Positions 1 through 64,000 of a DNA stretch of 64,000 nt are shown one piece after another; position 1 is the stretch's first letter; the number at the start of each line of letters is the position of its first letter. Location of the stretch: NCBI RefSeq assembly GCF_037042905.1, contig NC_087263.1:3162001-3226000 (forward strand), in the 5' to 3' direction. A program made the position numbers and the translations under genes. The DNA comes from Lytechinus pictus (taxonomy: Eukaryota). The notes beneath the pieces were generated by a model. That model searched no databases, had not been told where the DNA came from, and was given only the letters and a program-made list of their open reading frames with translations.

Positions 1-2537
1 CTTCTATTCGTCGATTTCCGTAAACAGGTTACCTATTTTTCTCTTTCAGTTGTTTGTTTCTTGGTTAAAGGGTCGCATTTAGATTCGTGTGAAATCACAC
101 AATTCAATTCTTATCACCACTGTTTGACTAGCACCAAACATGTATTGATTGTAACACTAACTCTGTTCAGTTTTCTTTGTTTTTTGTTGTATTTTTAAAA
201 ACAATTTGGGATACCAAAAATATTAACTAAATAACTGAAATTGATTTTAGATAGAGGGAAAACCCTGGATGTTAGGTTGACTGGAACCATTTGTAAACCA
301 AAAACAAGTATTTAAGATTGATGAAATTAAAAGAAATAATTGTGGCATACTCTATCTTTCAGCCCTCTTCCCTCTTTCTCTCCTTGTCTTTGTAATTGTA
401 ATAACGAACCCAAAACTACTCTCCCCCCCCCTTTTATTGGTGGTGAGGTAATCCCGAAATTTACTTTAGAACCATACGTATTCTTTAGCCCATTTATGTT
501 CCTTTATACGGTTCCATATGTTGTCCATGTTTATAATTATTTGTGAACATTTGGGAAACTTTCCTCCCCTATATATCTCCTTCCACAAACGTCCCCCAAA
601 ATTATTCAAATGCATGAAAACACCCCAGGAATGCCAAATTCATATATACTGAATATTTTTTTGCCCCCTTTCTGAAATTGGTGGAAACCTTTCTCATTTT
701 AATCATATTAAGTGGAGAAACCTTCCCGTGTTTGTCATATTCTCTGTTGCTATCTTGGCAGAGTAAAATATGCCATCAGTCCCATGCATAGTCTTTGATG
801 TCATGTTGTGGTGTTTTGTTTAACAGATATCATGCTGTTCTAACCAAATTTATCCCCATATTCAATAGTTGGTTGTTACTGTTCATTCGGTTTGATTAGC
901 TTGATGTGGCTTGTTTTTTTCTTCACTTCCGTGTTTTTTTCCTTCCAATTTTTATCTTTAAAACCACCATGCATTGTTTGCTGTGATTTATTATTATTAA
1001 ACCCAAAACAAGGATTCTGACCTACCATGCATCGTTACAATTAACACTCGCTAGTTCGTTCGTTCGTTCGATCAATCTGTTACATGGTTTTTTAGTGAAA
1101 TTTTGCTCTCGATCAAAATCAATTAAAATCACATAATTGCAATATTTGATGTTTCCAAGAGCTTTTTGTACTAAATGTTCTCAGTGTCATGCCTGACCTG
1201 TATGCGCCCCCTTCAGTGGGTCCTAACGAACTGTTACATGTTTAAATTCCTAGTGTATATCTTGAAGTCCTTACTGTGCAGACATAACTGTATTATTACT
1301 TGATTCGTCTTGTACTCACAAGCCACGGCATCAACAAAATGAAACTAGTTCCGTGTTAAACTTTGTCTTTGTAACGTTTTTGTCTCGATCTTTTGTACAT
1401 CTATGCCACAACTATTTTTGTGCCTATTTTTGTGTTTGGAATAGTCCATATATATTTTCCAAATTCAACAACTTAGAAAGAAAAAAAGTCTTCATTTTCA
1501 AAAGAGTTGAAAATAAACTTTTGTGATCAATGTTGTTTAAATATAATACATATAGGAGGAGGGCAATATTTTGAATTAATATTTTAAATGGGCACCTCAT
1601 TTGCCACAAAAATGCCTCAAAATTTTTCAAAAGTTATTCACTTATTCCCTGATATTATTTCTCTGTCTTGAGTAAAGAGTAAATGAATTACACATTATTT
1701 ATTTATTTTTGTTAGAAGACACTGTTTATTTTGCTTGATCAATTTCTATGATTACAAATTCCTGCCATTTTATTCAGATTTGAATGAGATGTTTCATTAC
1801 ATCTCATAGAAATGTGTAGAAATGTGTAATATGGAATTCATCGCTGGCAAGACCAGAATGGAATTACAATTGGATTTATAATGGGAACCTATACCATCCC
1901 TTTTTTATGATTCCATATTTTCATTATAAATTGATTGTTAAGGATTGGTATTTGATTTAATACTTGTGGATTATATGAAAGAAAATTTGACTACAACATT
2001 CGCTGAAGTTGGATTCCACTGCTTTCTGCAAGTTTGAGGCAGATTTTAGAATAAATAAATATATTAAGTAAAAATAATATGAATTTTCTTGAGATGCATC
2101 ACACAACTGCCTCAAGAAATTAAATATAACTCCTATTTTGAAGTTCAGGGCTGATATTAAAAACTCTTTACCAGGGTTGATGTAAAAAAGAAAACTAAGA
2201 AATTGACTTTTCGAATCCAACTTTTGAAACAAGGAAATTGAATTTTTTCGCTCATGTCAAAGTTTATGCTCAGTGGAAGATGCAATGCTTTGATATGAAA
2301 CTATAACTATTTTGGGTGAATTAAAGGTTAGTTCAGTTGTAATCAGTTCTTAGAAATCTGATTGTATTTCAAATTTCATGAATAAAGATGAGTAGTGCAT
2401 TTCATAGAAACAAGATATTCTTATAAAGGAAGATGCATCGTGACCTAAAATGATAAAAAATTAATTGTGAATTTTGTTTTTGGTAGATCAAGTCTTTTTA
2501 TATCAAATTTGTTATGTAATGATTCTCTACCCCACAG

Positions 2538-5504
2538 CACAATTTCCCAACGGTTTTGGACCCATCAATGCTTTCCAGCAACAACAACAACAGCAAGTCG
2601 GAGCCGCAGGTCAAAAACAAAAAGAAGGTAAGAAGGGTTTGGCAGACCTGCCAACCAGCACATTTTAGCCGTATTTAGTACGTTTTTTTTAATTTTTTTT
2701 TAAAAACTAAATCGTAATTTATTGAGAAAAATCTCTATATGTCTCTATTTCATAAAACGTACACAAATATGGTTAATAGATCAATGTAATTTCAGGTTAC
2801 TTTTTTTTCAATCATTTTGTTAAAACCAGTGTGAAGATATATACATGTTTTAATGTTTTTTTTTTCATCTGCAAGAGCAGTGCGAATTTTAGCTTGCATG
2901 CAGCTTGAGCGCCGTGATGAGCGAGTGCGCCAAGCATTTTATTATGAAATACACTTTTTTTGGGAAAAATACATTTTTTTTATCGCAGAATAGTTTTTCA
3001 TTCCTAGAGGTTGGCAGGTCTGGTTTGGTGGATACCAAGAAGGGTGCACTGCCACTCAGGTCTATTCTCACTTGGTCCAAAGACTGCATAGTCCAATCAA
3101 ACTGGTTCTGAAGACTTCTTAGTCAAAACCAACTTGGTCTGAAAACTGCTTGTCAAATTTCCTTTCATCTAAATACCACTTAGTCAAAACCAACTTGGTC
3201 TAAAGACTGCATAGTCCAATCGAAGTTGGTCTAAAGACTTCTTAGTCAAAACCAACTTGGTCTAAAGACTGCTTAGTCAAATTTCCGTTCATCTAAGGAC
3301 CACTTCAGTCAAAACCAACTTGTTCTAAAGACCACTTTGTCAAATTCAACTTGTTCTAAAGACCACTTTAATTTTATAGTCAGAACCAACTTGGTCTAAA
3401 GACCACTATGTCAAACGAAGTCCAACTGGGCCGAAGACCACTTGGTTAATTTCCACTTCATCTAAAGCTCGCTCTGTCAAATTCCACTGGGTTTAAATAT
3501 TGCTTACTAGTTTTTGTAATCTGACTTGGTCTAAGGACCGCTTACTAGTTTTCTATTTATATCCAACTAAAGACCACTTTGTCAAATTCCACTTGGTGTT
3601 ATCCAATTTAGTTTAAAGACTGCCTGGTCAAATCCAACTTTATATAAATACTTCTTAGACCACTTGGTCTATTCTCACATGATCTAAAGACCGCTTGGTT
3701 GAATTCAATTTGGGCCGATTGCACTTGGTCTCAAGACTGTTTGGTATCATTCCATATGGTCTATAAGCGTTTTTCCTATTCCCATTTCATATAGTCCCAT
3801 TCCTCATCTAAGTCTTTGACTAAAGACTGTTTAGTCCATTCTTACTTGGTGCATACATTAGGTCTCATGGGCCCCGTTGCATAAGAGTAATACCATTATG
3901 GTAACTTTGCCACCCAATGGTAAGTTGCATGGAATCCTTTGATTGGCTGTTGATCATCATTACCATGGTAGTTACCATTGAATAGCAAAGTTACCATAAT
4001 AGTAATTTTTATTCAACAAGGCCCTGGACCAAGTAGGATAACATTAAACCCTATCCAACTGTCATTATATCAGCTGCTTTTGCATTGCAAATTGGCAAGA
4101 ATTATTAATTTTCTGTTCATTTTCTTACATTAAAGATAAATATAGTTATAATAGAGCCAAAATGAATCCACAGCTAAAAGCTGCCAATTTTCATATTCAA
4201 ACTGCAACAAGCTATAGTCAGAACCCTGATTTTATTCCTATTTCATAAATTATTTATAAACGTGTCTTGTGTATAGGTCCAGAGGGCGCTAATCTATTTA
4301 TATACCACCTACCCCAAGACTACACGGACACGGATCTAATTTCAATGTTCTCTCCGTACGGCGGTATCCTCAGTGCAAAGGTCTTCATCGACAAAAATAC
4401 GAACCTCAGCAAATGTTTCGGTGAGTATCCCGCTCTTCTCTGATGCTCTCGCTCTGGTGACAATATGCACCTATAAATCAAGGACACCACTTTCCAAACA
4501 AATAAGCAGGAACTCATTCTTATTCCACTTAAAGATAAATACCAGTTGTGGTAACTCTCTCAGAATGAGTTTGAACAGAATCCAATAAAATGACCACGCA
4601 AGTGTTTTTCATAAATTAAAAATATGTGCCAAATGGCTCCAGAAACAAAATTGTGTCATTGCTGAGAAATGAGCAAACTAAGCACAGAATTTTCCATTAT
4701 ATGTCAGGTATTTTTCCAAACAATATTAATGCACTGTCCCACATGTGCCTTTCTGTGTTAGTAATCATTTGAATTATCAATTTTCAGCTAAGATTTCATG
4801 ATTTCACAAAGATGAGTTTATTTCAATGTACCAGAACTAGATCTATGATAATTTGGTAGCATTTAACCTTGATTTTAAAGACTTTATCATGGAATAATTG
4901 TTTGCTGCAACTACTTTCTTTCTTCAATAGGGAAGCTAAGACTTCACAATCAAGCGAATGATCACATATTAAAGGTCTTTTTTTTTTAAATCCTAAACTG
5001 TGATGTGTGTTGTATGTAATGTTGTTTATATGAATTAAAAAAAAAAAAAAAAAAAACCTAGAAAGTAAGTAGACCAGGCATAGCAAGATATCTGTCTCTG
5101 AAAATCATTTCATTTGATACTGGTGATTCTAATTGCTCCACAAAATTGGGATAGTGTTTCTCGTCATTTTCCCCCACATTTTTGAAGCACTAAGTAATAA
5201 TATTCAGGCGCAAATTTCTCTCAGGGCTTCAACTTTACAACATATCACATAATTGGGTAGCAAGAAGGACCTAACAGCTTTAGTTTTGTAAAGTCAAATC
5301 AATATTAACCAGTGCATTTAACTAGTAAATTTTCATCTGGGCTTTTGTTTGTTGTTTAATTTTTTTTTTGTGTCAGGTTTTGTAAGTTACGATTCACCGA
5401 TTTCAGCGCAGACAGCCATCCAGGCAATGAACGGTTTCTCAGTAGGCACAAAGAGGTTAAAAGTCCAGCTCAAGCGCTCTAAAGAAGCTAGCAAACCGTA
5501 CTAA
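2538..5504 (+). CDS. CELF2: CELF1/2-subfamily (CUGBP/ETR-3/Bruno-like) RNA-binding protein, 3' part (end of linker + RRM3); exons 2538-2627, 4277-4420, 5377-5504; upstream exons not identified in the window
   Basis: Exons have AG/GT boundaries and join in phase to give ...[123 protein letters not shown]2 (NLFIYHL) and RNP1 (KCFGFVSY) are present. GPEGAN and KRSK..SKPY indicate CELF1/2 rather than CELF3-6. The invertebrate gene is co-orthologous to CELF1 and CELF2, so the symbol is nominal. Confidence 0.95.
3050..3850. repeat. Degenerate minisatellite (~15-16 bp subunits, ~31 bp units, 123 bp higher-order period) in a CELF intron
   Basis: Recurring AAAGACCACTTAGTC/AAAACCAACTTGGTCT units; AGACTGCATAGTCCAATC occurs at 3081 and 3204. 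Confidence 0.85.
3870..4023. mobile_element. MITE with GGCCCCGTTGCA termini (Harbinger-like); same family as 42813-42941
   Basis: Inverted termini GGCCCCGTTGCATAA / TTATTCAACAAGGCC; internal ACCAT..GGTAAC motifs shared with the 42813 copy. Confidence 0.7.
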
Positions 5505-32359: not shown

Positions 32360-35300
32360 CATGGGCGGAAATCTCTCCCCGAAGGTAGGGGGGGACCAGG
32401 GGCGGATCCAGCTCCCGCCAATTTGTTCACCCATATTCTCCACGATCGGTCGCTAAAAGTTGATTTTTGTTTGTTTCTTTGAAGGGGTTGTCCCAGTGGC
32501 GTAATGAGCCAAAAATTTTGAGGGGGCTTGATACGGCGTATCACGTAAAATTAATAAGAAGTTGCGAGCGAGCAAAAATTTCAAAAATGTTCATTACAAA
32601 AATCAGGCTTTATATTTCACCCTTATCCCTTTCCTTTTCTCTTTTTGTTTCTTGGTCGTGAAAAATTGGGGATGGGGGCAAAACGCCGATGTCCTAACAG
32701 TCATTTCTAACTTTATAAAAAACATTAAAAAGTGTAGTAATTTCATAAGCCATATTTAAATAGTGCGAGCGCGAAGCGCGAGCTTATTTTTTTTCGAATT
32801 TCATGTATTTTGTCCTGAAAATTGAATATTCTGGGCAATGTGTGTGAACAAGATGCGTATGTAGCTAAATAATTACTGCGAGCGGTTCTGGCTTCATCTG
32901 TAAAGCCCCTTTAGCCCCTTTCACAATTGACGTACGACCTGTTTACGACCACCTGCAACAGTTTTTTCTTGTTGTTGCACGATCGATCCCTTGGTGTCTT
33001 ACGAGCACTCGCAGTCGTTGTAGACAATCGCACAAACTCGAGGTGGTCGGAGGTGATCGTGACTGGTCGCATCTGAACTTTGAACATGTTCAAAATCCAA
33101 ACGCGATCAAATACGATTGATTCACTCGCAACAGGTCGTACCATCAGTCGGGCGATCATCGTGTGAGTGTTGTTCAACGTTGTACGACTTGGTGCGAGAG
33201 GTGGCACAACTAAGTATAGTCGCATTTAGTCGACTGGAGGTCGTACAACACTTGCACATGTGCTGGAGACCTACAGAGACCAGTCTTGCGACTGGGTGCG
33301 ATAATATAAGACTGTTGCAAGACCGATCGAAATTACAGCTTATAACATTCCACTACCGTTGCATTCGAATGTATGCGACCGTTCAGCCCCTTTCACAATT
33401 GACGTCCGACCAGTTTACGACCGCCTGCAACAGTTTTTTCTTGTTGTTGCACGATCGATCTCTTGGTGTCTTGCGAGCACTCGCAGTCGTTGTAGACGGT
33501 CGCACGAACTCGAGGTGGTCGTGAATGGTCACATCTGAACTTTGAACATGTTCAAAATCCGAACGCGATCAAATACGATCGATTTACTCGCATCAGGCCG
33601 TACCCGAGGTCGTACCATCGGTCGGGCGATCATCGTGCGAGTGTGGTTCAACGTTGTACGACTTGGTGCGAGAGGTGGCACAACTAAGTAGTCGCATTTA
33701 CTTGACTGGAGGTCGTACAACACTTGCACATGTGCAAGCAACCTAAATGTACAGAGACCTGTCTTGCGACTGGTTGCGATAATAATATGGGCCATAAGAC
33801 TGTTGCAAGACCGATCGCAACAGCTTACAACATTGCACTACCGTTTCATTCGCATGTATGCGACCGTTCCACTCGCAATCCCTCGTGCAACACTCGCATG
33901 TGATCGCACGAGCACAATAAGAGCATATGCGACTTACTCGTGCAACGGGGTTTACTGGTTGTTTTTGTTGTACGACAGATGTTGCAACTGTGAAAGCCTC
34001 TGTGCGATCTTATGAGATGACTAGCGATTGATGCCTGTTGCAGCCTGTCGCACGACCAAAAGGTCGCAAATGGTCGTACGTCAATTGTGAAAGGGGCTTT
34101 TCACAATTGACGTACGACCTGTTTACGACCACCTGCAACAGTTTTTTCTTGTTGTTGCACGATCGATCCCTTGGTGTCTTGCGAGCACTCGCAGTCGTTG
34201 TAGACGATCGCACAAACTCGAGGTGGTCGGAGGTGATCGTGACTGGTCGCATCTGAACTTTGAACATGTTCAAAATCCAAACGCGATCAAATACAATTGA
34301 TTCACTCGCAACAGGTCGTACCATCGGTCGGGCGATCATCGTGTGAGTGTTGTTCAACGTTGTACGACTTGGTGCGAGAGGTGGCACAACTGAGTATAGT
34401 CGCATTTAGTCGACTGGAGGTCGTACAACACTTGCACATGTGCTGGAGACCTACAGAGACCAGTCTTGCGACTGGGTGCGATAATATGAGGCTGTTGCAA
34501 GACCGATCGAAATTACGGCTTACTACATTCCACTACCGTTGCATTCGCATGTATGCGACCGTTCAGCCCCTTTCACAATTGACGTCCGACCAGTTTACGA
34601 CCGCCTGCAACAGTTTTTTCTTGTTGTTGCACGATCGATCTCTTGGTGTCTTGCGAGCACTCGCAGTCGTTGTAGACGGTCGCACGAACTCGAGGTGGTC
34701 GTGACTGGTCACTTCTGAACTTTGAACATGTTCAAAATCCGAACGCGATCAAATACGATCGATTCACTCGCATCAGGCCGTACCCGGGATCGTACCATCG
34801 GTCGGGCGATCATCGTGCGAGTGTTGTTCAACGTTGTACGACTTGGTGCGAGAGGTGGCACAACTAAGTAGTCGCACTTACTTGACTGGAGGTCGTGCAA
34901 CACTTGCATATGTGCAAGCGACCTACATGTACAGAGACCTGTCTTGCGACTGGTTGCGATAATAATATTGGCCATAAGACTGTTGCAAGACCGATCGCAA
35001 CGGCTGACAACATTGCACTACCGTTTCATTCGCATGTATGCGACCGTTCCACTCGCAATCCCTCGTGCAACACTCGCATGTGATCGCACGAGCACAATAA
35101 GAGCATATGCGACTTACTCGTGCAACGGGGTTTACTGGTTGTTTTTGTTGTACGACAGCTGTTGCAACTGTGAAAGCCTCTGTGCGATCTTATGAGATGA
35201 CTAGCGATTGATGCCTGTTGCAGCCTGTCGCACGACCAAAAGGTCGCAAATGGTCGTACGTCAATTGTGAAAGGGGCTTTAAAGGGATCTGATAAGGACG

Positions 35301-36753
35301 TTTTGCAGTTAGCCATTTTTGACATTCTAAGCACTATTTGTAATCATTAACGGTATAGGTATAAAACCAAACAAATAATGCGAGCGCGAAGCGCGAGCGG
35401 AAAAATTGAGATTTCAGACCTGATAATGGGACACTCTATTCATGTTTTGTAAATCATGAAAAAAGATGGAAAATTACATTAATAATGCAAGTGTAAAGCG
35501 CGAGCAGCAATTTTATTGACATTCTGATCTGAAACTGGATAAATTTAGCACGTTTTGAATAAAGATCAAGCTGCGTATCTTAATAAAACTGTGTGCGCGT
35601 GTTTTAGAGTTAGGCAGAATCTCATTCTGAATACATGTCATTTTTATCATGAAAATCAATAATGCAAGCGCGAAGCGCGAGCGGAAAATATTTGATATTC
35701 CGGTATGAAAAGGTGAATTTAAGCACTATCTAAAGCACTGTGTAGGGAAATTGTGAAGTGGATACGGATAGCACGTAATAAATGATGCGAGTGAGAAGCG
35801 CGAGCCGATATTTTTATTACTATTTTGACCTGAGACTTAGACATTCTTGGCCTAAGGACATTTTGTCATCATATGAAAATGATGACTATCCTCCTATTCC
35901 TATTTTGAAAAAGCGACAATTTTGTTATTAGGAATTCATGAAAATTTTATCTATCGTATTTATTAATGTTATAAGCATAAAAAGTGAGTGAAATTTGTTG
36001 ACATTGAGGCCTGAAAACTGGATATTTTAAGCACTTTTGTAATCATGAATAGGATTTATGAGTTGATATATATTTTCAACAATAATGCCAGCGCAATCGC
36101 GGACGAAATTTTTGATAAACTGTCAAAAAAGGGGGATTTTAAGTAATTTGTTTTAGAATTAATACCGGTATATAAAGAATATGATGGACTAAACAGAGAC
36201 AATATGTAGGCCTACGTGGCAAATCAAATAAAGCGAGCGCACAGCGCAAAAAGCTGCAAATGATATTCACACAATAAAACGGACATTTTACAGAGCAATT
36301 TGTAAATCAAACAAAATAATAAAAGCTCGATGTTCGAGCTGAAATATATGCATTGTATATTTCAAAACTTGGTTATTTTAAGCTACATATCAGCCTTTTA
36401 AACACGATATGTATTTCGTCGAACAGGCTATGCGAGCGCGAAGCGCAAAACTTTAATATAGTGACATGAAATATATTTTCAAATCATTTTCCAAGTCTTC
36501 CCTTGACCTTATTTCATTCACTCGTCTCCCTCCTCTTATTTTTCCTCCTTTTCCCCCTTCCGTTTTCTTTCTTTCCCTCTTTTTTCCATTTTTTTATCTT
36601 CCAAAATACATGTATTGTTTCGATTTTTATTGATGTATTTCTTTCCATCATAAAAGACCAAAAATAGTAGGGGGGGCAATTGATATTGTGTCCCCCCTAC
36701 TATTTTGGGTAGGGGAACGCGACCCCCTGTCCCCCCTGGGATTTCCGCCCATG
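32360..36753. mobile_element. Non-autonomous hAT-type element (composite)
   Basis: TIR CATGGGCGGAAATC / GATTTCCGCCCATG; exact 8-bp TSD AGCTAGGG (32352-32359 and 36754-36761); internal GCGAGCGCGAAGCGCGAGC repeats. Confidence 0.9.
32904..35279. mobile_element. Tandem array of non-autonomous PIF/Harbinger elements: [3'-truncated copy + full 714-bp copy] x2, period 1180 bp
   Basis: Left TIR AGCCCCTTTCACAATTGACGT at 32913, 33385, (34099, clipped) and 34565; inverted right TIR ends at 34098 and 35278; TAA on both outer flanks (32901-32903, 35280-35282). The TIR start is identical to that of the transposase-coding element at 62441. Confidence 0.9.
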
Positions 36754-61675: not shown

Positions 61676-62440
61676 ATTATAACAGTATATCGTATACATG
61701 GTACGCCAGTAATACATCAATAATCGCATAATACAATTTCCGTAGATTTCCAATGAAGAAAATTGACTCAAGGCCTACATTTGTTTTTAAAGTGAGATAT
61801 GTTCTATTTCAATTTCTTTATTTTACACACCATTTAAAGCGATCATCTTTTGTCCAAACAAATATTTTTGTCATTTTTTTCTCCCGTAGCTTGACTTCTT
61901 CGAAAGTGGGTCGAGAACTGGTCTCCATGAAGGCATTCAGGATTTACCAGATTGAGGGAGGGGGGGGGGCGCACTTTAAAAAAATCACAAACACAAAAAG
62001 GGCAAAAGAAAAAAAAATGTGTTAGAGCCACCAACATAGAGAATTTATCTGTACATTATCTTTTTATGCCCACCCCCAAAAAAATGTAAAGGGGAAGAAT
62101 GCAACTCAGACACCCTCCCCCGCCCCCTTCTTCCCGGGTCCAATCTAGTCTGCTGTGCAAACCCTTCACTCGAGTTAAGGGTCTGAATTGCAGCCAAGTT
62201 TTGTATGTGCTAGTCTTTGCGTGGAGACACATTTGTTGATCAAAGTTTCTATCAGGGTCTGTGTCTGCAGACTATAGGTCCAATCCCGCTTGACGCTGTA
62301 CATCTCTGCCTCCATTTCCGTCGTAGGTTATAGAACCAGAAAACTGAGATACCATGTGACTAGACTTTGCTAGACAACGGATGATTGAAGGGAGCAGATT
62401 CATAAAATAAAAATAATCAGTGATTTCCATTGACAACTGT

Positions 62441-64000
62441 AAAGCCCCTTTCACAATTGTTGCCAAACAGACTACAACGGCTTGCGACTCGAAATTTTTC
62501 CCGTTGTACGACTCGTTGTAGCCGTTGTACCACTTATTGTACGATCCAGATGCGACAAAATGGTCGCATCTCGGTCGGGAAAAAAACCCGTGCTGCTCCG
62601 ATATTTTGAGCGACTGACGCGATGAAAAATAATTGCACGACAGGCAGTACGAGTGTTGTGCGACTTTGCACGCACTCGTAAGACCCCGAACGAGTATTGC
62701 ACGAGTATTTTCATGTCGTACGATGATGCATCCTGTCGTACGAGTCCGTTGTACCACCCTAAGACTATTGGAAGACCTGTCTTGCCCCCTTTGCAACGTT
62801 GTACGATTTTTTTTCACCCCCAATATAAGCTCGAGAACTCCTGAGCTTTCATCCAAAATGTCTGGACCATCCATACTGTAAACATGGCTGCTGCTCGACC
62901 AATAGCTCCTGGGAGGCTCTTGCATTTGCTAAGTCTGAGAAGGCAAATCCAAAACGTTCAAGACAGACATGTCATATTGATGGCCTTACTCATCCGTAGA
63001 CGTCAAAGACATGCAAGGCAAAAAAGAAGGTGGTGGGTCAAACCCTGGATTGAGAGACGTGTGCTGTTTGGACAGTATGATAATCTGATGACGGAGTTGC
63101 AGAGAGAATGTCAGGGTGACTTCCTGAACTACATGAGGATGCCACCAGAAACGTTCCTTGAACTGTTGCAGCGCATCACATCGAGGATAGAGAAGTCCTA
63201 TCGCTACCGGCAGCCACTGGATCCTGGGCTCAAACTGGCCATCACCTTGAGATATCTTGCGACCGGCAACAGCTACAAAACCCTGCAGTATGCCTTCCGT
63301 GTTGCCCATAATACCATCTCTCTGTTTATACCAGAGGTGTGCCAGGCCATCATCAGTGAATACCAAGATGAAGTATTTTCCTGTCCAACTACCCCAGATG
63401 AATGGAGAGAAGTGGCACGGACTTACGCTGACAGATGGAACTTTCATCATGTCTGCGGAACCTTGGACGGAAAACACGTGGCCATCAGAAATCCACCAGG
63501 CTCTGGTATGATCTACTATAACTACAAGGGTTTCTACAGCCTCATCCTCTTGGCCCTAGTTGATGGCAATTACAAGTTCCTCTGGGCTGACGTTGGTAAT
63601 CCCGGTTCATCATCGGATGCCCAGGTCTTCAACCACAGCCCGCTGAGACGTGGACTGGAGAATGGTACTCTTGGCCTGCCAGATCCAGAGCCCCTGCCAG
63701 ATGATGACCGAGACACCCCTTACTTCTTAATTGGGGACGACGCCTTCCCTCTCAGGACATGGATGCAGAAGCCGTACTCCAACCGTGAGCAGACCGACGA
63801 GGAGAGAATCTTCAAGTACCGTCTCTCGAGGGCTCGCCGTGTGGTGGAGAACAGCTTTGGCATCCTTGCCCATCGCTGGAGATGCTTGTCGAGTACCCTA
63901 CAGCTTGATCCAGAAAAAGCCAGGACAGTCATTATGGCCTGCATGTGCCTCCACAACATAATGAGAGATCGTTTTCCTGGGCTTCAGAACATTGACGTTG
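62441..64000 (+). mobile_element. PIF/Harbinger DNA transposon, left end and transposase gene; runs off the window
   Basis: Left TIR AAAGCCCCTTTCACAATTG, ~400 nt of subterminal GTACGAC/TGCGAC motifs, then the transposase ORF. Confidence 0.9.
62884..64000 (+). CDS. Harbinger DDE transposase (HARBI1/ALP1-like, DDE_Tnp_4 type), >=372 aa, open to the window edge
   Basis: Hand translation from ATG 62884 shows no stop: RRWWVKPW, FLNYMRM, KLAITLRYLATGNSY, CGTLDGKHV (D1), YYNYKGFYSLILLALVD, DVGNPGSSSDAQVF, LIGDDAFPL (D2), RLSRARRVVENSFGILAHRWR (E), CMCLHN. Confidence 0.95.
   Translation, partial: MAAARPIAPGRLLHLLSLRRQIQNVQDRHVILMALLIRRRQRHARQKRRWWVKPWIERRVLFGQYDNLMTELQRECQGDFLNYMRMPPETFLELLQRITSRIEKSYRYRQPLDPGLKLAITLRYLATGNSYKTLQYAFRVAHNTISLFIPEVCQAIISEYQDEVFSCPTTPDEWREVARTYADRWNFHHVCGTLDGKHVAIRNPPGSGMIYYNYKGFYSLILLALVDGNYKFLWADVGNPGSSSDAQVFNHSPLRRGLENGTLGLPDPEPLPDDDRDTPYFLIGDDAFPLRTWMQKPYSNREQTDEERIFKYRLSRARRVVENSFGILAHRWRCLSSTLQLDPEKARTVIMACMCLHNIMRDRFPGLQNIDV

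Follow-up and report, generated by a model that had tools for sequence, protein, structure and literature searches.

The right-hand end of a 64,000-nucleotide stretch of Lytechinus pictus DNA (C19:3162001-3226000; "the window" below means this whole stretch) holds the left end of a DNA transposon of the PIF/Harbinger type. The element is 4,598 bp long, with terminal inverted repeats (TIRs) of 17 nucleotides (nt) and TAA on both flanks, and its left end (window 62443-64000) makes up about the 5' third. Its continuation beyond the window was read in locus L013, where a window coordinate is the L013 coordinate plus 62000. The features at this end are as follows.

62440-62442, no strand: left flanking triplet TAA; the right flank (L013 5041-5043, past the window) is TAA too
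62443-62459, plus strand: left TIR, AGCCCCTTTCACAATTG, with a length of 17 nt; its right counterpart is at L013 5024-5040
62460-62883, plus strand: left subterminal region upstream of the transposase gene, dense in GTTGTACGA(C/T) and TRCGAC words
62884-64000, plus strand: DDE transposase (DDE_Tnp_4), codons 1-372 of 433; the frame ends at L013 2185, window-equivalent 64185

The sequence-only reading of the window had noted that this left end is identical over 19 nt to the right TIRs of two miniature transposable elements with inverted repeats (MITEs) in the same stretch. This identity was recovered: the 19-mer AAAGCCCCTTTCACAATTG has three exact matches in the window, at 62441-62459 on the plus strand and at 34082-34100 and 35262-35280 on the minus strand, where 0.03 matches are expected by chance, and three further copies with two mismatches lie at 32911, 33383 and 34563. 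The true TIR is 17 nt and not 19, because the first two A's of the 19-mer belong to the flanking TAA. The 17-nt TIR is perfect at both ends of the L013 element and of all eight full copies (8/8).

Extension to the right gave the stop of the transposase frame, the right TIR and a Myb/SANT-like (MADF) partner gene, all of which the same reading had named as things to look for there. The transposase open reading frame (ORF; L013 884-2185, plus strand) encodes 433 amino acids (aa). From the ATG at 62884 it is open to the end of the window (372 codons), as had been reported for that part, and it continues to its stop with no frameshift downstream. DDE_Tnp_4 (PF13359) matches across the full profile (1-158 of 158, E 2e-31) and PF04827 matches with an E value of 3.5e-9. 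The catalytic motifs, D (GTLDGKH), D (WADVGNPG) and E (VVENSFG), are all within the window. No match to the transposase was found among the solved structures with which it was compared.

The second gene, which Harbingers had been expected to need, has two exons on the minus strand and converges on the transposase gene. Exon 1 occupies L013 4564-4186, the intron runs from GTAAGT to TTTTCAG, and exon 2 starts at L013 4068. The exons were searched separately, and spliced NCBI gene models of sister copies stood in for a joined one; three of these models (P0122, P0123 and P0124) have the same exon junction (…KLGVT-V-ADIRLWY…). The MADF_DNA_bdg profile scores 26.5 bits with P0122 and 23.9 bits with P0123, against a Pfam cut-off of 22, and exon 1 alone gives an E value of 0.0035. 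The complete product, represented by copy L051, consists of 126 aa, one split codon and 302 aa, that is 429 aa, with basic runs resembling nuclear localisation signals, a MADF domain that spans the intron and a glutamine-rich C-terminus. In the window copy and in a near-twin at C12:18.40M, codon 145 of exon 2 is followed by a TGG>TGA change, with an 8-bp insertion closely downstream, whereas seven other copies read through here in one frame. The truncated product of 272 aa predicted for the window copy keeps the MADF domain and loses about 157 C-terminal residues. The two genes are separated by an AT-rich spacer with a tandem duplication of about 480 bp (L013 2271-3224, element positions 1829-2782; the units are 83% identical). 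Some copies are without the duplication, one unit being missing in L014 and L046.

The L. pictus assembly contains 28-29 copies of the element, which are 96-100% identical, with a median pairwise distance of 1.1% (1.10%) over the first 1.8 kb. The transposase frame of 433 aa is uninterrupted in 14 copies, the ORF states of the other copies being taken from six-frame protein searches. Copy number, identity and intact frames thus bear out the earlier suggestion of a young family. On the other hand, the MADF gene is intact in three copies only (C3:77.57M, C9:2.05M and C13:15.11M), and in each of these the transposase is deleted or stopped. The earlier view of the window copy as a candidate autonomous element does not hold in that form, given its stop and 8-bp insertion in the MADF gene. 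The window copy and its twin at C12:18.40M differ by 0.4% over 1.8 kb, without any difference in the first 1,560 nt, and they have different flanks; near-identity with different flanks means a very recent transposition. Moreover, five copies (C8:30.13M, C12:28.04M, C16:6.67M, C5:22.26M and C6:20.71M) form a subfamily with one common deletion, L013 3708-4443, by which most of the MADF gene is lost. Since this deletion is found at five sites, and the transposase is intact at four of them, the transposase-only form must itself have transposed. Short deletion derivatives of the long element were not found in the L. pictus assembly, where left ends of the long type number only 29. One such derivative, of 536 bp, was seen in a marine metatranscriptome (run X17), in a contig that spans L013 442-872 and 4938-5042, joins position 872 to 4938 and has foreign flanks.

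The elements at 32.9-35.3 kb of the window that share the TIR had been described as a MITE array. A tandem array was considered and rejected, as one unit lies within the left TIR of another and the triplet TTT is duplicated around it. The arrangement is the following.

32901-32903, no strand: left flank TAA of the outer element; the right flank, 35279-35281, is TTA, so that the pair is not a direct repeat
32904-32912, plus strand: first 9 nt of the outer 1,186-bp element (AGCCCC and TTT); TTT is the target of the inner element, and its duplicate is at 34099-34101
32913-34098, plus strand: inner 1,186-bp element with the same 17-nt TIR at its ends
33385-33401, plus strand: internal TIR copy where parts A and B of the inner element meet, preceded by TTC; the equivalent in the outer element is at 34565-34581
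34102-35278, plus strand: rest of the outer 1,186-bp element

The short non-coding unit is a composite of part A (472 bp) and part B (714 bp), in which part A repeats the left 485 bp of part B at 85%, TIR included. The internal TIR copy is not an insertion junction, because it is preceded by TTC. The ends and the TWA flanks are those of Tourist-like MITEs and no ORF was noted, but a length of 1,186 bp stands against less than 800 bp for that class, whose members are often deletion derivatives, so that the unit agrees with it only in part and is hardly a classical MITE. Of 30 loci read, 28 contain the unit in full at 97-99.6%. Its 30-nt end with a TWA flank has 852 exact occurrences in the genome and none in the reversed control, which corresponds to at least about 400 elements, and the same ends are also found on forms of about 700 bp. 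The pairwise distance in a young subfamily is 1.36%, and older nested copies are 85-93% identical. The GC-rich word GCGAGCGCGAAGCGCGAGC was found on both sides of the nested pair (window 32760-32790 and 35380-35400), and the pair may lie inside another repeat.

The short and the long element are identical in all 17 nt of the TIR, have like TWA flanks and hold subterminal words of 12-13 nt in common. The word CGTTGTACGACT occurs three times in the subterminal regions of the long element, once at positions 60-71 and at two sites close to the right end, and the short element has it two or three times; 12-mers are shared at 8 positions, where 0.22 are expected. The dense subterminal motifs that had been reported for both element types stood up to counting: per 100 nt, TRCGAC is counted 1.65-1.94 times in the long element's two subterminal regions and 1.9 times in the short element, compared with 0.03 in the background of the window and 0-0.08 in coding sequence, an enrichment of about 60 times over background.

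The target site was examined in 80 half-sites, which have T at -3 in 77 of 80, W at -2 and A at -1, and in which A is depleted at -4 (6 of 80); the flank is TWA in at least 77 of them. The sequence-only reading had proposed a target preference extending beyond TAA, from the observation that both left ends follow CTGT. The letters are indeed present at both ends, but they consist of CTG and the T of the TAA flank, and an extended CTGT target was rejected by the counts (C at -6 in 25, T at -5 in 24 and G at -4 in 24 of the half-sites). The depletion of A at -4 is the only preference outside the triplet. The triplets on the two sides of an element are identical in 43 of 80 elements and unequal in 37, with TAA/TTA in 25, TTA/TAA in 7 and other unequal pairs in 5. 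The counts by group are given below; for the 35 further short elements, left and right ends were matched up by hand among the first 100 exact ones.

29 short elements: identical 14, TAA/TTA 11, TTA/TAA 1, other 3
35 further short elements: identical 21, TAA/TTA 9, TTA/TAA 5, other 0
8 long L. pictus copies: identical 5, TAA/TTA 3, TTA/TAA 0, other 0
8 copies of two other species (see below): identical 3, TAA/TTA 2, TTA/TAA 1, other 2

Loci with unequal flanks include the outer element of the window (32901-32903/35279-35281) as well as L017, L025, L031 and L033. In six nested insertions with known pre-insertion sequence, 3 nt were gained in every case (6/6): TAA became TAA/TTA twice, TTA became TGA/TTA, GAA inside a TIR became TAA/TTA, GTA became TTA/TTA and TTT became TTT/TTT. 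Point mutation was rejected as the source of unequal flanks, since about 4% unequal pairs would be expected at about 0.7% divergence and 46% were observed. Three other parsings, namely a 2-bp TA duplication, a 1-bp duplication with element-owned A…T, and blunt insertion at T|A, were each rejected because they miss the invariant T at -3 or are one base off the 3-nt gain.

Copies were also found in the clam Solemya velum (GCA_048127485.1; L052, L054, L055 and L056) and in the sea urchin L. variegatus (GCA_018143015.1; L053 and L057-L059). In S. velum, three chromosome-scale scaffolds carry the four copies, all in gap-free sequence and with TIRs and flanks of their own. No match to 9.3 kb of these flanks was found in the urchin genome, urchin repeats included. 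The distance is 1.73% between L. pictus and S. velum and 1.25% between L. pictus and L. variegatus, and the inter-phylum range is 1.1-2.6%. The S. velum copies are 2.2% from one another, which makes them mutually the most diverged; they are more decayed than the urchin copies and lie at the base of a star-like tree. In the base run after the left TIR they are of the L. pictus type, and L. variegatus has instead a TIR of 22 nt. Proteins of S. velum were matched by the MADF query. In L. variegatus there are three transposase-only copies (L053, L057 and L058), which lack element positions 2439-4190, and one full-length copy with a MADF protein of 423 aa. Transposase-only deletion forms have thus spread independently in both urchins. 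Host DNA beside one L. variegatus copy matches L. pictus at only 78-84%. Furthermore, public runs of at least seven differently labelled organisms and of a marine sediment metagenome contain about half of the stretch's 31-mers, and contigs of three public runs cover the whole element at about 99%.

We hypothesize that 62443-64000 is the 5' third of a very young 4.6-kb PIF/Harbinger element whose family works by complementation in trans, has a 1,186-bp non-coding partner and has recently spread by horizontal transfer, and we give this reading a probability of about 0.8. The element would be cut and pasted by its own DDE transposase, which would need the second, element-encoded MADF protein. The MADF protein would bind the repeated CGTTGTACGAC-type words beside the 17-nt TIRs and so bring the transposase to the ends; the left subterminal region is presumed to be a binding region of this kind. 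Insertion would then take place into TWA with addition of 3 nt. The window copy could supply transposase, its MADF gene being cut short by the stop codon. As intact transposases (14) and intact MADF genes (3) are on separate copies, the family could move only if copies complement one another in trans, or if the truncated MADF protein still works. The DNA binding by MADF, the cross-mobilisation and present-day activity are steps that we infer.

Several points weigh against this reading. No copy in this assembly has both genes intact. No spliced RNA contigs were seen among the assembled contigs of public runs; contigs from RNA libraries at the MADF gene (L013 3932-4091 and 4121-4344) run into the intron and may be DNA or unspliced RNA. 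An empty-site allele for the window insertion was not seen in the assembled contigs either, a test that is weakened by the high-copy repeats at the flanks. The short element has no alignable similarity to the long one beyond the 17-nt TIR and scattered words of 10-13 nt, by which it was rejected as a deletion derivative, and at least 12 further Harbinger transposase lineages, 47-54% identical and with open frames of 446-476 aa, are present in the L. pictus genome (for example C12:219204-220463, C5:14366056-14367315, C25:142359-143618 and C17:8441328-8442587). Finally, the yardstick of host divergence is one locus in a locally repeated region and is hence rough.

The first two of these points, together with the missing empty allele, would also be expected of a recently dead family, in which the burst is over and the intact transposase ORFs have merely not yet decayed. 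At about 0.55% from the consensus, about half of all 1.3-kb ORFs would be open by chance, which fits 14 of 28. On the other hand, the near-identical pair formed by the window copy and C12:18.40M records a very recent transposition, intact versions of both proteins persist in the genome, and the transposase-only form has reached five sites. A dead family is an alternative to a trans-complemented one that we consider somewhat unlikely.

For the short element, cross-mobilisation by the proteins of the long family is plausible. With an identical TIR, like flanks, common words and similar ages (1.36% in the young short subfamily and 1.10% in the long family), the transposase and MADF protein of this family would be the best candidates for moving the 1,186-bp element. 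The short element could instead be moved by another Harbinger lineage, with the common TIR due to shared ancestry or convergence. The lack of alignable similarity speaks for this, any of the other open-frame lineages could be the real source, and nested copies at 85-93% suggest that the 1,186-bp family may pre-date the long family with its 1% divergence. Against it stand the identity of the TIR over all 17 nt, the repetition of CGTTGTACGACT in the subterminal regions of both elements, the equal age of the young subfamily and the odd flank pattern, which is found alike in long and short elements. Another source of the transposition proteins thus seems unlikely to us, and the long family is preferred.

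Because the copies are only 1.2-1.7% apart across species and have flanks of their own, the comparison points to recent horizontal transfer into L. pictus, L. variegatus and S. velum, that is, across phyla; its direction we infer. Oyster transposases (Saccostrea and Crassostrea; P0008, P0083 and P0053) are 68-74% identical to that of the element and the best match in Strongylocentrotus purpuratus only 56%, which would be another sign that relatedness here departs from host phylogeny. The clam evidence comes from one S. velum assembly and not from reads, and the clam copies could in principle be contamination or mis-assembly. Four copies in gap-free sequence, spread over three chromosome-scale scaffolds and all with TIRs and flanks of their own, flanking DNA that even urchin repeats do not match, and a mutual divergence and decay exceeding those of the urchin copies make this very improbable, and horizontal transfer is retained. 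A domesticated HARBI1-like host gene, which the NCBI name of cluster members ('putative nuclease HARBI1') would suggest and which would have undone the sequence-only reading, can be dismissed, since HARBI1 and NAIF1 of vertebrates belong to the same protein families but HARBI1 is single-copy, syntenic and without TIRs, whereas the 28-29 copies here are dispersed, have TIRs with TWA flanks and a MADF gene linked to the transposase, and are in many cases broken, and at the locus examined the two Lytechinus species have no insertion site in common.

The unequal flanks may be a footprint of the transposition chemistry, in which donor bases are partly inherited and the triplets are not a pure target duplication; we put this forward tentatively, as a possibility somewhat short of an even chance. 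At excision, staggered cuts would be made inside the flanking triplets, as proposed from work with mPing in yeast (PMC4561436). One strand of each old triplet would travel with the element as a 5' flap and pair with the gapped target, a pairing that may be compared to that of piggyBac with TTAA, and a mismatched middle base would be resolved either way. An excised element that kept one strand per triplet and paired at the new site would have unequal, partly inherited flanks. In yeast, mPing donors flanked by TAA/TTA were tolerated better than TTA/TAA donors (PMC4561436). Against carry-over, TCA-flanked mPing gave TTA or TAA at 45 of 46 new insertions (PMC4561436). If the pattern holds, it would be sequence-level evidence on how PIF/Harbinger transposases cut, for which no matching solved structure was found.

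The family resembles canonical PIF/Harbinger elements (TWA group, PHIS superfamily; maize PIF, rice Ping/Pong and mPing) in its DDE_Tnp_4 transposase with a separate, converging MADF gene, and in its short TIRs, TWA flanks, 3-nt gain and numerous non-coding partners that have nothing but the ends in common with it (PMC4482050; PMC2836001). It differs in its partner, a composite of 1.19 kb that repeats its own left arm and TIR internally, and in its flanking triplets, which are not identical in almost half of the elements. Harbinger-Snek and related marine Harbingers are common to sea urchins, bivalves, fish and sea kraits, and horizontal transfer has been inferred for them (PMC8437027). The sharing between urchin and bivalve is alike in both cases (Galbraith et al. 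2021, PMC8437027), but the inter-phylum distance is 1.1-2.6% here and roughly 10% there (PMC8437027). With its best S. purpuratus protein match at 56%, the L. pictus family is probably a lineage other than Harbinger-Snek. Functions are split among copies in other Harbingers too (PMC8437027; bioRxiv 10.64898/2026.05.26.728016). Harbinger-1M_cIno of Caenorhabditis inopinata likewise has DDE and MADF on different copies and an intron in the MADF gene, and its mobilisation in trans has been proposed (bioRxiv 10.64898/2026.05.26.728016). There, MADF-only derivatives have expanded and one DDE locus is left, whereas here 14 transposases and three MADF genes are intact.

The added value of the present family is its near-identity across phyla together with the flank anomaly. 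The echinoid and protobranch clam copies, at about 1-2%, are among the closest cross-phylum Harbinger matches yet, which makes transfer between marine invertebrates directly testable. Moreover, this animal Harbinger family has hardly decayed, and natural intact versions of both its proteins exist beside a partner in high copy; few experimental systems of this kind are available.

The window insertion sits among very high-copy repeats (window 62001-62400, which is L013 1-400, and L013 5001-5800). The summed contig depth on these flank repeats is about 50,000-170,000 in two runs, compared with about 350-950 for the element itself. No depth is seen on those repeats in a third organism in which the element is present, and such a hole in depth proves nothing. 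In both Lytechinus species, dozens of copies appear in RefSeq under the names 'putative nuclease HARBI1' and 'uncharacterized protein LOC…'. Several of these models sit on broken copies, such as P0124 (copy L047), which follows a frameshift, and the naming of transposon copies as genes inflates the gene counts of both species.

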